From Mizuhopecten yessoensis (Eukaryota): DNA of 62,789 bases. A model generated the notes under the pieces. The model was not told the DNA's origin and searched no databases. It saw only the letters and a list, made by a program, of their open reading frames with translations. The stretch lies in assembly GCF_002113885.1 (NCBI RefSeq), contig NW_018408759.1, forward strand, positions 230,707 through 293,495. The letters run 5' to 3'. Shown here piece by piece: positions 1 through 59,605 of the stretch (the stretch's first letter is position 1; the number at the start of each line of letters is the position of its first letter). The position numbers and the translations under genes were made by a program.

Positions 1-3000
1 CAACTTAAGGTTACAAGTACATAACTTGAAGAAACATCGGTTGTGGTAACATTACAAGGTAAGCATTCACACTAACAATGGAACAACTTAAGGTTACAAG
101 TACATAACTTGAAGAAACATCGGTTGTGGTAACATTACAAGGTAAGCATTCACACTAACAATGACACAACTTAAGGTTACAAGTACACAACGTGAAGAAA
201 CATCACTGGTGGTAACATTACAAGGTAAGCATTAACACTAACAATGGCACAACTTAAGGGTACAAGTACAAAACGTGAAGAAACACCACTGGTGGTGACA
301 TTACAAGGTAAGTGTTGATACTAACAATGACACAACTTAAGGTTACAAGTACATAACTTGAAGAAACATCGGTTGTGGTAACATTACAAGGTAAGCATTC
401 ACACTAACAATGGCACAGCTTAAGGTTACAAGTACAAAACGTGAAAGATACATCCCTGGCAGTTACATTACAAGGTAAGCATTGGTACTAACAATGACAC
501 AACTTAAGGTTACAAGTAAATAACATGAAGAAACCTAACTGTGGGTTACATTACAAAGTAAGTATTGATACTAACACTGACACGACTTAAGGTTACAAGT
601 ACATAACGTGAAAGAAACATCACTGGTGGTGACATTACAAGGTGAGTATTGATACTAACAATGACACAACTGACAAGTACATAACGTGAAGAAACATCAC
701 TGTTGGTTACATTACAAAGGAAGTATTGATACTAACACTGACACAACTTAAGGTTACAAGTACACAACGTGAAGAAACATCACTGGTGGTTACATTACAA
801 GTTAAGCATTGATACTTACAATGGCACAACTTAAGGCTACAAGCACAAAACGTGAAGAAACACCACTGGTGGTGACATTACGAGGTAAGTATTGATACTA
901 ACAATGACACAACTGACAAGTACATAACGTGAAGAAACATCGGTGGTGGTAACATTACAAGGTAAGCATTCACACTAACAATGGCACAACTTAAGGTTAC
1001 AAGTACAAAACGTGAAGAAACACCACTGGTGGTGACATTACAAGGTAAGTATTGATACTAACAATGACACAACTTAAGGTTACAAGTAAATAACATGAAG
1101 AAACCTAACTGTGGGTTACATTACAAAGTAAGTATTGATACTAACACTGACACAACTTAAGAATACAAATACACAACGTGAAGAAACACCATTGGTGGTG
1201 ACATTACAAGGTAAGCATTGATACTAACAATGGCACAACTTAAGGTTACAAGTACATAACGTGAAGAAACAACACCGGTGGTTACATTAGTAGGTAAGCA
1301 TTGATACTTACAATGACACAACTTAAGGTTACAAGTACAAAACGTGAAAGAAACATCACTGGCAGTTATATTACAAGGTAAGTATTGATACTAACAATGG
1401 CACAACTTAACGTTACAAGTACAAAACGTGATGAAACATCACTGGTTGTTACATTACACAGTCAGTAGTGATATTAACAATGACACAACGTAAGGTTACA
1501 AGTACATAACGTGAAGAAACATCACTGGTGGTTACATTACAAGGTAAGCATTGATACTTACAATGGCACAACTTAAGGTTACAAGCACAAAACGTGAAGA
1601 AACACCACTGGTGGTGACATTACAAGGTAAGCATTGATACTAACAATGGCACAACTTCAGGTTACAAGTACATTACGTGAAAGAAACATCACTGGCAGTT
1701 ACGTTACAAGGTAAGCATTGATACTAACGATGGCACAACTTAAGGTTACAAGTACATAACGTGAAGAAACATCACTGGTGGTAACATGAGTAGGTAAGCA
1801 TTGATACTAACGATGGCACAACTTAAGGGTACAAGTACATAACGTGAAAGAAACATCACTGGTGGTGACATTACAAGGTGAGTATTGATACTAACAATGA
1901 CACAACATAAGGTTACAAGTTCATAACGTGAAGAATCAACACTGGTGGTGACATTACAAGGTAAGTAGTGATACTAACAATGACACAACGTAAGGTTACA
2001 AGTACAAAACGTGAAGAAACACCACTGGTGGTAACATTAATAGGTAAGCATTGATACTAACAATGACACAACGTAAGGTTACATGTACATAACGTGAAAA
2101 AAACATCACCGGTGGTAACATTACTAGGTAAGTATTGATACTAATAATGACACAACGTAAGGTTACATGTACATAACGTGAAAAAACATCACCGGTGGTA
2201 ACATTACTAGGTAAGTATTGATACTAATAATGACACAACTTAAGGTTACAAGTACACAACGTGAAGAAACATCACTGGTGGTTACATTACAAATAAGCAT
2301 TCACACTAACAATGACACAACTTAAGGATACAAGTACATAACGTGAAGAAACATCACTGGTGGTTACATTACAAAGTAAGTATTGATACTAACACTGACA
2401 CAACTTAAGGTTACAAGTACATAACGTGAAGAAACATCACTGGTGGTTACATTACAAAGTAAGTATTGATACTAACACTGACACAACTTAAGGTTACAAG
2501 TACATAACGTGAAGAAACATCACTGGTGGTTACATTACAAAGTAAGTATTGATACTAACAATGACACAACTGACAAGTACATAACGTGAAGAAACATCCA
2601 TAGTGGTTACATTACAAAGTAAGTATTGATACTAACACTGACACAACTTAAGGGTACAAGTACATAACGTGAAGAAACATCGGTGGTCGTAACATTACAA
2701 GGTAAGCATTCACACTAGCAATGGCACAACTTAAGGTTACAAGTACAAAACGTGAAGAAACACCACTGGTGGTGACATTACAAGGTAAGTATTGATACTA
2801 ACAATGACACAACTTAAGGTTACAAGTAAATAACATGAAGAAACCTAACTGCGGGTTACATTACAAAGTAAGTATTGATACTAACAATGACACAACTTAA
2901 GAATACAAATACACAACGTGAAGAAACACCATTGGTGGTGACATTACAAGGTAAGTATTGATACTAACAATGACACAACTTAAGGTTACAAGTAAATAAC

Positions 3001-3647
3001 ATGAAGAAACCTAACTGCGGGTTACATTACAAAGTAAGTATTGATACTAGCAATGGCACAACTTAAGGTTACAAGTACAAAACGTGAAGAAACATCACTG
3101 GTGGTTACATTACAAATAAGCATTCACACTAACAATGACACAACGTAAGGTTACAAGTACATAACGTGAAGAAACATCAATAGTGGTTACATTACAAAGT
3201 AAGTATTGATACTAGCAATGGCACAACTTAAGGTTACAAGTACAAAACGTGAAGAAACATCACTGGTGGTTACATTACAAAGTAAGTAATGATACTAACA
3301 ATGACACAACTTACAAGTACATAACGTGAAGAAACATCAATAGTGGTTACATTACAAAGTAAGTATTGATACTAGCAATGGCACAACTTAAGGTTACAAG
3401 TACAAAACGTGAAGAAACATCACTGGTGGTTACATTACAAAGTAAGTATTGATACTAACACTGACACAACTTAAGGTTACAGGTACACAACGTGAAGAAA
3501 CATCACTGGTGGTGACATTACAAGCTAAGCATTGATACTAACAATGACACAACTTAAGGTTACAAGTACATAACGTGAAGAAACATCACTGATGGTTACA
3601 TTACAAAGTAAGTATTGTTACTAACAATGGCACAACTTAAGGTTACA
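1..3647. repeat. 83-bp minisatellite, ~44 copies, runs off the window start
   Basis: Unit caacttaaggttacaagtacataacgtgaagaaacatcactggtggttacattacaaggtaagcattgatactaacaatgaca recurs at 1, 84, 167 and so on; the last unit overlaps the final codons of the Ly6-like exon. Confidence 0.97.
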
Positions 3648-3755
3648 GAGCTGCCTGTTGCAACACTCCGAACAAATTGTTCCTGCTGATTCGTCTCGTT
3701 TTCCAAAAGGTGCACCAACCGCCTGGTTTGATAAACAGGTTTGTAGATGACACAC
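3621..3755 (-). CDS. Ly6-like gene, CC...CN exon (last, or last visible, exon)
   Basis: ttttttttcAG acceptor; VCHLQTCLSNQAVGAPFGKRDESAGTICSECCNRQLCNLKLCHC* with TAG at 3621-3623; an alternative donor GTTAGT overlaps the stop. Confidence 0.78.
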   Translation of the reverse strand: MCHLQTCLSNQAVGAPFGKRDESAGTICSECCNRQLCNLKLCHC

Positions 3756-58061: not shown

Positions 58062-59435
58062 ATGGATGAAGAGGAACCCATGGATATTTCTGGAGAGTCC
58101 TTCTCTTTGGGAAGTCCAACAAGGTTACATAGGCATTCTGCAAGTAGGATTGTTCCCCGTCGACAATCCTTTCCCCTGAAACAGCAGTCAAGGTCAGTGG
58201 ACCGTCACTTATCGACAAACAGGACTCCTAAACGTATGTCCATGTCTGCCCTACAGTCAAATTACTCCAGAGGATATTCCTCCAGTACACCTCAACACTT
58301 ACTACCGAGTTCCACTGAACTGCCATCTCCACTCAGTGAGCAAATCCGGACCAATTCAACACCGATCCGAAGTCTGAGTGATCGGTTTGAAGGACAATCA
58401 AAAACTAGACGTCGACGTTACAATCACCATCCAACAAATGGAGAGGAGGATGATCCAAGCACCAGTCGTAAAGACCAACGTAAACCCTTTGAAAGGAACA
58501 AATCTGAACCATATATAAGCATCAAACAGAAGCTTTCATTTTTGGTATTTCTATTGCTGCTGTTTATCATTATAAATATTGTGTATAGAGCCAAACCGCC
58601 GCAGTGTAAAATGACTGTTGATATTGCAAAACTGAAGGATCAGCTAAAGAAAAATATGTTTGGTCAGCACATAGCCGCAGGTTTAGTAATGTCATTAGCA
58701 AAAAACCTATCCCTACATTTCCGTAAATCACTGAAGAACTCTCAGACGGTTGTTTCTTTCCATGGCTGGTCAGGTATAGGTAAAAACCACCTAGCTAATA
58801 TACTCAAGCAAACATTTAAACCAGCCAAAGTTAATACATTCCTTGTACCGTTACATTTCCCCCATAGATCTCAGGACCACCAATACCAGACAATGATCCC
58901 ACAGTGGATAAAGGGTAACATTTCGTCGTGTAGCATGGGTGTGTTTATCTTCGACGAGATGGACAAGGCATCTGATGGTGTGATCGAAGGACTTCGCACT
59001 GCTTTAACACAAATAAAGAATTCCAATGTAACTACCAGAGTGTGGACCATGTTTATTCTACTCAGCAATAGTAGAGGAACAGACATCAACAACTATTTAT
59101 TCTCACAGCTACAAAAAGGTCGTGAACGAGAAAGTTTGACACAAGAGGAGTTCATGCCCACCCTCATTAATAATGGAGAGGGGAGTTGGTACATGCCTTT
59201 CCTTGAGGAGGGACTTATCACACACACAGTGCCATTTCTGCCCCTCACTCAGGCACATGTAAAAAGCTGCATCATCCGTGACTTATACCTGAAGAAGATG
59301 GTTCCTAACAAGGAAACAATACAGAAGATTTTAGGTGAGCTCCCATTTAACCAACCCAGAGAGGAAAGTGAACTTTACTCTACAACAGGCTGTAAAAGGG
59401 TGTCCTCCAAAGTGGACCTACACATGGACGACTGA
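58062..59435 (+). CDS. TOR4A: Torsin-4A-like AAA+ ATPase, 457 aa, single coding exon
   Basis: Disordered N-terminus, one TM helix (LSFLVFLLLLFIIINIVY), FGQHIA, Walker A SFHGWSGIGKN, HFPH, Walker B FIFDEMDK, sensor-1 FILLSN, VPFLPL...HV..CI and the torsin GCK motif (TTGCKRV); ttttcttaattgcAG acceptor at 58049-58050 just upstream. Confidence 0.93.
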   Translation: MDEEEPMDISGESFSLGSPTRLHRHSASRIVPRRQSFPLKQQSRSVDRHLSTNRTPKRMSMSALQSNYSRGYSSSTPQHLLPSSTELPSPLSEQIRTNSTPIRSLSDRFEGQSKTRRRRYNHHPTNGEEDDPSTSRKDQRKPFERNKSEPYISIKQKLSFLVFLLLLFIIINIVYRAKPPQCKMTVDIAKLKDQLKKNMFGQHIAAGLVMSLAKNLSLHFRKSLKNSQTVVSFHGWSGIGKNHLANILKQTFKPAKVNTFLVPLHFPHRSQDHQYQTMIPQWIKGNISSCSMGVFIFDEMDKASDGVIEGLRTALTQIKNSNVTTRVWTMFILLSNSRGTDINNYLFSQLQKGRERESLTQEEFMPTLINNGEGSWYMPFLEEGLITHTVPFLPLTQAHVKSCIIRDLYLKKMVPNKETIQKILGELPFNQPREESELYSTTGCKRVSSKVDLHMDD

Positions 59436-59605
59436 CATCTATCAACCCAGGGAGGAGAGTGTCTTAAGATAAAGACAGGCTGTAAAAAGATGCCTGTAAA
59501 GCAGACATTCACATGAACGACTGACATTTACCAACCCGGGGAAGAGAGTGACTTTAGCCTAAAGACAGGCCGTAAAGCAGACACTCACACGAACACCTGA
59601 CATCT
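59344..59605 (+). repeat. ~90-bp diverged tandem triplication of the torsin C-terminus and stop codon
   Basis: Copies start at 59344, 59436 and 59525: cattta.caacccag.gagga.agtg....acaggctgtaaaa...aaag..gac...cacatg.acgacTGA. Confidence 0.85.

Follow-up and report, generated by a model that had tools for sequence, protein, structure and literature searches.

The question raised by this locus is why so many of its minisatellites lie across the end of an exon, with a stop codon or a splice junction inside the repeated unit. The locus is a 62,789-nt stretch of Mizuhopecten yessoensis DNA (the window; G000:C5432:230707-293495, from a 988-Mb draft genome in 82,659 contigs), in which a single N at 8380 and another at 57504 were kept unchanged. 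An earlier note on this DNA had proposed that a mechanism tied to exon edges nucleates the arrays. The computational analysis reported here located true exon edges in the arrays, and indicated that frequent random local duplication combined with selection, not a mechanism aimed at exon edges, probably accounts for them.

Tandem Repeats Finder detected about 22 separate arrays with periods of 16-156 bp within the window, together covering 21.6 kb or 34% of it. Coding DNA makes up 10%, the same share as had been estimated before, and belongs to three genes: a Ly6-like gene, a TPR-CHAT (TTC28-like) gene and a torsin gene. The array units drift, with 78-95% matches, and arrays were seen only in introns or untranslated regions (UTRs), in agreement with the earlier prediction that a selection filter retains them there. 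An Rfam search of the window gave no match. In four arrays the first unit spans a real exon edge, which is the stop codon of each of the three genes and, in the fourth case, the donor of TPR-CHAT exon 6. These arrays, the 51-bp array that makes up the fifth of the main set, and the genes that contain them are as follows.

1-3647, no strand assigned: 83-bp minisatellite, 44 copies inside the window
3621-3757, minus strand: last coding exon of the Ly6/three-finger-like gene, ending ...ECCNRQLCNLKLCHC-stop, TAG at 3623-3621
About 4853-4695, minus strand: candidate upstream Ly6-like exon with the pattern CFIC...C...C
18003-18814, no strand assigned: 59-bp minisatellite, 13.6 copies, TPR-CHAT 3' UTR
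18800-19045, minus strand: last TPR-CHAT exon (labelled E17), ending ...MKLYLPYIQST-stop, TAG at 18802-18800
18800-50757, minus strand: TPR-CHAT gene, 19 predicted coding exons from ortholog tblastn and splice sites
Exons of this gene, minus strand: 50757-50653, 50080-49871, 49253-49076, 48806-47305, 46437-46094
Exons, continued, minus strand: 43934-43305, 42562-42393, 42179-41955, 41399-41252, 40929-40757
Exons, continued, minus strand: 35493-35390, 35025-34800, 33091-33006, 26769-26612, 26319-26199
Exons, continued, minus strand: 25983-25918, 24891-24815, 24338-24260, 19045-18800
35493-40564, no strand assigned: 51-bp minisatellite, 99 copies, intron 10, up to exon 11
42868-43318, no strand assigned: 33-bp minisatellite, 13.7 copies, from within exon 6 into intron 6
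58062-59435, plus strand: torsin open reading frame (ORF), 457 aa, ending ...GCKRVSSKVDLHMDD-stop, TGA at 59433-59435
About 59350-59610, plus strand: ~89-nt repeat, about 3 diverged copies, torsin end and 3' UTR

The exon edges of the TPR-CHAT gene were set independently of the arrays, by tblastn with five orthologous TPR-CHAT proteins of 1530-1618 aa and by inspection of splice sites. The query for the HMMER search for relatives was a 514-aa exon, and full-length relatives of 1530-1618 aa were returned, the best of which, P0001, comes from the Haliotis asinina assembly GCA_037392515. Each exon was searched separately, and no joined coding sequence or spliced protein was used. Pfam matches were TPR_12 (6.5e-23) and CHAT, the latter with 24.3 bits on one exon against a cut-off of 24. 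The 1530-1618 aa orthologs align over the whole gene, and all 19 exons are intact and conserved, as would be expected if splicing stays normal in spite of the decoy sites.

On these ortholog-anchored exon maps, the proposal that the 83-, 59-, 33- and ~90-bp arrays copy an exon edge was borne out, as the first unit of each spans the edge itself. The first 59-bp unit contains the last 5-6 codons and the TAG of the last TPR-CHAT exon, ...(Y)IQST-TAG. The C-terminus of the Haliotis ortholog, ...MKLYLPYIQS, matches up to 18806, one residue short of the TPR-CHAT stop, which is therefore ancestral. The 33-bp unit consists of the last ~24 nt of exon 6 and 9 nt of intron (GTAAGTTAA). The exon-6 donor, AAAA|GTAAGT, lies at 43305/43304, the matches of four orthologs all end at 43307, and the exon 6/7 junction restores the ortholog residue count. 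GTAAGT is intact in most copies, and the array supplies about 11 decoy donors. Many decoy sites are likewise created by each splice-junction array, as expected from the suggestion that these repeats are a source of them.

The first 83-bp unit on the gene strand (~3647-3565) includes the end of the Ly6-like exon, with its final 8 codons and TAG, as TGTAACCTTAAGTTGTGCCATTGTTAG, reading CNLKLCHC-stop. This array runs on upstream of the window to ~G000:C5432:225060, for ~9.3 kb in all. The name Ly6-like is provisional and is taken from a cysteine pattern (CFxC...C...C / C...C...CCxxxxCN) spread over two exons; searched singly, neither of these exons gave a Pfam match.

The torsin ORF matched Pfam Torsin (3.5e-20, 72.9 bits) and TOR1A_C (4.4e-08, 33.5 bits), both against a cut-off of 27 bits, and the C-terminal domain extends to residue 452 of 457. 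The human torsinA C-terminus is similar (...GCKTVFTKLDYYYDD). The first ~89-nt unit covers the last ~28 torsin codons, the TGA and ~5 nt more, two further copies lie in the 3' UTR, and the unit matches the torsin exon with z = 21.8.

In a global search of each unit against all exons, significance was reached only by the torsin and Ly6 units; the overlaps of the 59- and 33-bp arrays are short and are persuasive only through their register at the array edge. The coding ends of torsin, of TPR-CHAT and of exons 5 and 6 are kept in other species. The repeated pieces are conserved coding sequence, and copying therefore ran from exon to array in all five main arrays.

The 51-bp array, which had been described as a copy of the exon-11 acceptor, ends on the acceptor AG (35495-35494), but its exon overlap is 1 nt, so that it is an intron-side copy. 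Its unit includes the pyrimidine tract and AG of the acceptor with only that nucleotide of exon, and is built of 23- and 28-nt subunits, each ending in TGTTGTTTACAGT. The array occupies 5071 of the 5263 nt of intron 10, and the exon 10/11 junction gives the ortholog's residue count exactly. A 3.7-kb core consists of 153-bp triple units that are 100% identical, which indicates either a very recent expansion or assembly smoothing.

Three further arrays had been placed at or within tens of bases of splice sites. The case for these is weaker: the 34-bp array begins 28 nt from the exon-5 donor, the 16-bp array begins 48 nt from a donor, the 30-bp array lies farther from its splice sites, and the 46-bp array lies >500 nt from any exon. 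The 30-, 46- and 16-bp arrays are no boundary copies.

24475-24727, no strand assigned: 30-bp array, intron labelled 15, separated by 87 nt from its donor and by 136 nt from its acceptor
31632-32957, no strand assigned: 46-bp and 16-bp arrays, intron after exon 33091-33006

Both the genome and the orthologous locus of another mollusc were searched for the arrays. The 59-, 33- and 34-bp arrays were found at no other site in the genome. The 51-bp array has one 95-97% identical piece on a second small contig, at most a hint of variation in length or between haplotypes, and otherwise weak ~70% matches, and the 83-bp repeat is present on several contigs. One of the 83-bp loci, G000:C2897:454362-455606, carries a paralogous Ly6-like last exon, 91% identical, joined at the same point to ~0.9 kb of 83-bp array. 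Because this exon copy adjoins it, the second locus represents a gene duplicate rather than a dispersed satellite, and the same exon-array junction implies that the 83-bp array is older than the duplication of the Ly6-like gene.

In Haliotis asinina, 17 of the 18 TPR-CHAT intron positions are shared with the window, torsin adjoins TPR-CHAT too, and the head-to-head order of the two genes (window 50757-58062) is conserved. The ortholog locus (58.7 kb) contains 1.8% tandem repeats, and none was found there at an exon edge. The comparison of orthologous introns that had been called for in the earlier note thus showed the edge arrays to be missing from abalone. As the arrays are absent from abalone and locus-specific, their origin falls within the lineage of the window.

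Between the TPR-CHAT and torsin genes lie two oppositely oriented fragments of reverse transcriptase, matching Pfam RVT_1 at 52546-52971 (plus strand) and 53103-53474 (minus strand) with 28 and 26.5 bits, just below the cut-off. Further ORF pieces resembling long interspersed nuclear elements were seen at 55700-56452 and 10632-10904, and these had no Pfam match.

The number of arrays at exon edges was compared with chance by a permutation in which each array was collapsed to one unit and the 22 seeds were redistributed over the window, none of them wholly inside exons. Window-wide, five seeds touched an edge and 1.26 were expected (P = 0.007); this value and that for the stop codons, given below, are nominal, as the window was picked for showing the pattern. 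Within the TPR-CHAT gene the excess was not significant. Free of arrays, the introns of this gene total 13.7 kb, are mostly 200-700 nt each and have 38 edges. The introns were thus short before the arrays expanded, and a sizeable share of seeds therefore meets an edge by chance: ~1.8 of the 14 arrays are expected to lie across an edge, and three are seen (P = 0.27), or four if the 34-bp array is included (P = 0.11).

The position of the breakpoints was also informative. The exonic share of the unit across the five main arrays is 0.02, 0.33, 0.34, 0.73 and 0.95, as random breakpoints would give; the breakpoints are not anchored to the edges.

For an independent sample, 40 rhodopsin-type receptor genes (Pfam 7tm_1) that lack introns and have complete open frames were drawn from the same genome; with flanks of 1.5 kb upstream and 3.5 kb downstream they amount to 234 kb in total. 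Arrays cover 9.5% of its bases, at 0.24 per kb. An array spans the stop codon in only one of the 40 genes, compared with 0.68 expected, and the 5' edges of arrays are evenly distributed with distance from the stop. The single spanned stop belongs to the following gene.

G000:C1349:866012-871791: L038 receptor gene, with the array at locus positions 2319-2991 in gene orientation

The L038 array (46 bp, 14.6 copies) begins 49 nt before the stop. Its first unit is formed by the last 16 codons, and the stop appears where the junction to the second unit shifts the frame by +1. Taken together, the non-random excess at edges that had been suspected held nominally for the window as a whole, but was not reproduced within the TPR-CHAT gene or at the stop codons of the receptor genes.

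Several observations weigh against an explanation by random duplication and selection. All three stop codons in the window are spanned by an array, where fewer than 0.1 were expected (P ~1e-4, nominal), and the window-wide count of 5-6 edge arrays exceeds the 1.3-1.9 expected at nominal significance. The difference in stop-codon spanning between the window (3/3) and the receptor sample (1/40) gives a Fisher P of 3e-4, and receptor genes represent genes with broad or germline expression poorly. In addition, array lengths may be inexact in a draft assembly, and the exon model is a prediction from ortholog alignment and splice sites. The three spanned stop codons represent either a chance cluster that came with the selection of the window or an effect of gene class, such as germline expression.

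A process tied to exon edges, such as transcription- or splicing-coupled R-loops, borders of chromatin or methylation, or slippage at composition steps, could seed arrays preferentially, and the nominal excess in the window, chiefly at its three stop codons, would be consistent with it. So would the occurrence of GTAAGT in four of 20 window units, which ranks this hexamer at the top of 90 of the same composition. However, two of these four units are antisense to the host gene, and no enrichment of GTAAGT was detected among independent units (1/35). Together with the lack of a significant excess within the TPR-CHAT gene, the unanchored breakpoints, and the absence of any excess at 40 independent stops around which array edges are evenly spread, this makes preferential seeding at edges unlikely, and the nucleation mechanism put forward earlier is not sustained. 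Chance alone would place about one edge-spanning array in each gene-rich 60-kb window, so that recurrent sightings in this genome do not count as evidence for it. A donor-motif "core" shared by the units, considered as a candidate, was rejected for the same antisense and independent-unit counts, and because no 5-mer or 6-mer survived correction for multiple testing. Separately, a perfect donor consensus, AG|GTAAG, occurs on the plus strand in the units at 27100-27422, 24475-24727 and 1-3647, antisense to the annotated genes; no plus-strand gene that would explain these units was found in the window.

Frequent random local duplication followed by selection is therefore the probable origin of the arrays. 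In this model, the mollusc lineage would very frequently duplicate stretches of 16-160 bp locally in tandem and expand them, and these duplications would fall irrespective of exon edges. Where a founding duplication happened to cross a stop codon or splice junction, one copy would retain the intact exon end and its signal, namely the first in a donor or stop array and the last in an acceptor array. Surplus copies in the intron or 3' UTR would be tolerated and could be amplified by slippage or unequal exchange. Duplications lying entirely within coding sequence would be purged by selection, and for this reason the surviving arrays would appear to grow outward from exon edges. The permutation provides a quantitative null in which, once arrays are collapsed, chance and purifying selection explain most of the pattern, and it cautions against taking such arrays as proof of splice-site-directed mutation.

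It is also conceivable, although very unlikely, that the arrays are retained because they are useful, as decoy sites or U1-binding ladders that tune splicing or as regulatory repetitive 3' UTRs. The intact GTAAGT in most 33-bp copies would fit such a role, as would the 51-bp unit, a multiple of three without a stop triplet in any gene-strand frame; but the arrays are missing from the abalone ortholog, their units have drifted, and the same introns hold equally many arrays that carry no splice or stop signal. The absence of stop triplets from the 51-bp unit leads to the listing of three overlapping repeat ORFs of 1380-1440 aa (35253-40579, minus strand), which are mechanical artefacts and could mislead gene finders. 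More generally, arrays of this kind yield hundreds of decoy splice sites and long spurious ORFs, which is of concern for annotation.

An assembly artefact, in which arrays or their sizes derive from mis-assembled repetitive reads, has slightly less still to recommend it. The fragmentation of the draft and the perfect identity of the 3.7-kb stretch of the 51-bp array at a 153-bp period are compatible with it, but array borders are diverged and join unique sequence cleanly, the same exon-array junction recurs at the paralogous locus, and similar arrays exist at independent loci. Finally, dispersed satellites or transposon-borne repeats lying beside exons, to which the apparent exon ends and stops would belong, were rejected as extremely unlikely: the spread of the 83-bp repeat over several contigs, the weak 51-bp matches elsewhere and the frame-shifted stop of L038 would suggest them, but four arrays are confined or nearly confined to the window locus, the second 83-bp locus is a gene duplicate, the units do not occur at many unrelated loci, and the coding ends that were repeated recur, conserved, in proteins of abalone, annelid and echinoderm and in Pfam TOR1A_C, so that the exon is the source.

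A further question is whether such amplification can generate an intron, for which intron 5 of the TPR-CHAT gene is the case to be considered.

43935-46093, minus strand: intron 5, 2159 nt, AAG|GTACTC ... TTTTAG|G

This intron is composed of a 9-nt head, a 34-bp array of ~60 units (44017-46065), a copy of the exon-5 end, a degenerate unit and a ~40-nt tail with the acceptor. The 34-bp array accounts for 2049 of its 2159 nt (about 95%) and is derived from the last ~47 nt of exon 5, which are coding. Where the array ends, on its far side, the final 39 nt of exon 5 recur as a copy (44040-44002) that is identical at 31 of 39 positions, a similarity equalled in none of 2000 shuffles; in exon 5 these nucleotides encode the conserved ...HCPFGILQDWYS. 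The bases directly after the donor are a further copy of exon-5 sequence (P = 0.0015), and the start of the tail is unit-like (P = 0.002), each flank having been used separately in these tests; 100 nt of each were joined solely to display a local alignment. The head, GTACTCATG, resembles the continuation of the abalone exon, GTACGTGATG, over a stretch too short for significance.

The position of intron 5 falls within one unbroken exon in Haliotis asinina (residues 668-979), in an annelid (GCA_903813345, 538-948) and in an echinoderm (GCA_001949145, 160-944); the protein P0024 was uninformative on introns, as its contig has none and resembles a transcript. At the homologous point of the orthologs that lack the intron, Haliotis has CCAG|GTACGT, a proto-splice site AG|GT, and the annelid has AG|GC. 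A copy of the exon-6 start within intron 5, suggested by eye, was dropped, as no significant match was obtained. The extreme ends of intron 5, compared with its flanks, are no outlier among the 18 introns of the gene (fractions 0.18-0.20), and this comparison did not show the acceptor to be a derivative of the exon-5 end.

Since intron 5 is absent from three orthologs and its array comes from exon-5 coding sequence, it is a candidate for recent intron gain, and the simplest reading of the sequence is that it was gained in the window's lineage. Two histories would fit this reading: creation of the intron by the duplication itself, or expansion of a short, young intron of ~50-75 nt. It is possible, with the chances somewhat against it, that amplification of the kind known as mirage in amphioxus (see below) acts here as an active source of new introns, and that intron 5 arose from a segment of a once uninterrupted exon, carrying an AG|GT site, that was duplicated in tandem, spliced out and then expanded to 2.1 kb. 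If so, intron 5 would be an intron gain caught in the act, with a body still legible as copies of the coding sequence next to it. If, in addition, ladders of stops and donors proved to be enriched in germline-expressed genes, gene structure would be reshaped systematically by this process. To our knowledge, clear animal examples of intron birth through tandem repeats are few, and intron 5 offers a concrete, testable candidate.

The closest known counterparts of these arrays are the minisatellites called "mirages" in amphioxus, where boundaries between exon and intron are duplicated in tandem in Adh3, globin, troponin C and PGBD5 (PMC3087553, PMC3902484; Canestro et al. 2002, as cited there). 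Those genes are spliced normally; the mechanism behind the repeats is unknown, and a model of intron gain has been proposed (PMC3087553, PMC3902484). As in the window, the mirage unit joins an exon end, at a 5' or a 3' boundary, to the adjacent intron, the authentic copy stands at the edge of the array, units range from tens of bp to ~160 bp, and many decoy AG/GT signals result. The 33-bp array corresponds to this description most directly: its unit holds the exon end, intron and donor, the authentic copy lies at the array edge, the frame is kept, and the exon end is ancestral. The differences are that mirages were described in cephalochordates, whereas the host here is a mollusc; that the window also contains stop-codon and 3'-UTR versions; and that its arrays are much longer, with up to 99 units in the window and ~9 kb for the 83-bp array. 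For mirages, experiments demonstrated that splicing is normal and that array length is unstable, whereas the arrays of the window are known as sequence.

A similar arrangement exists in intron 7 of human F7, where the first element of a 37-bp variable number tandem repeat spans the donor (PMC1557585). There, as in the window, the first unit lies over the exon-intron junction and the true donor is followed by identical cryptic donors. Experiments showed that the 5'-most donor is used at this single human locus with few copies, whereas the choice of site in the window is a prediction.

Tandem repeats that include an AG|GT proto-splice site have also been proposed to create introns (the Rogers model; PMC2812944, PMC4974935, PMC3087553 Figure 7), and internal tandem repeats at exon-intron boundaries have been tied to new human introns (Zhuo et al. 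2007, as cited in PMC2812944). Intron 5 agrees with this model in being lineage-specific, in its AG|GT site and in its tandem copies of the adjoining exon. In the model the intron starts as a copy of the downstream exon and ends as a copy of the upstream exon, whereas only upstream-exon copies are significant in intron 5.

So far, boundary minisatellites have been described for individual genes of amphioxus and for a few human loci, with their origin unexplained, and no report of mirage-type arrays in molluscs was found in the literature searched. In conclusion, the arrays at exon edges in the window belong to the mirage class, a known kind of repeat that is seen here in a mollusc at unusual density, spread over introns and UTRs of three adjacent genes and with stop-codon versions included.

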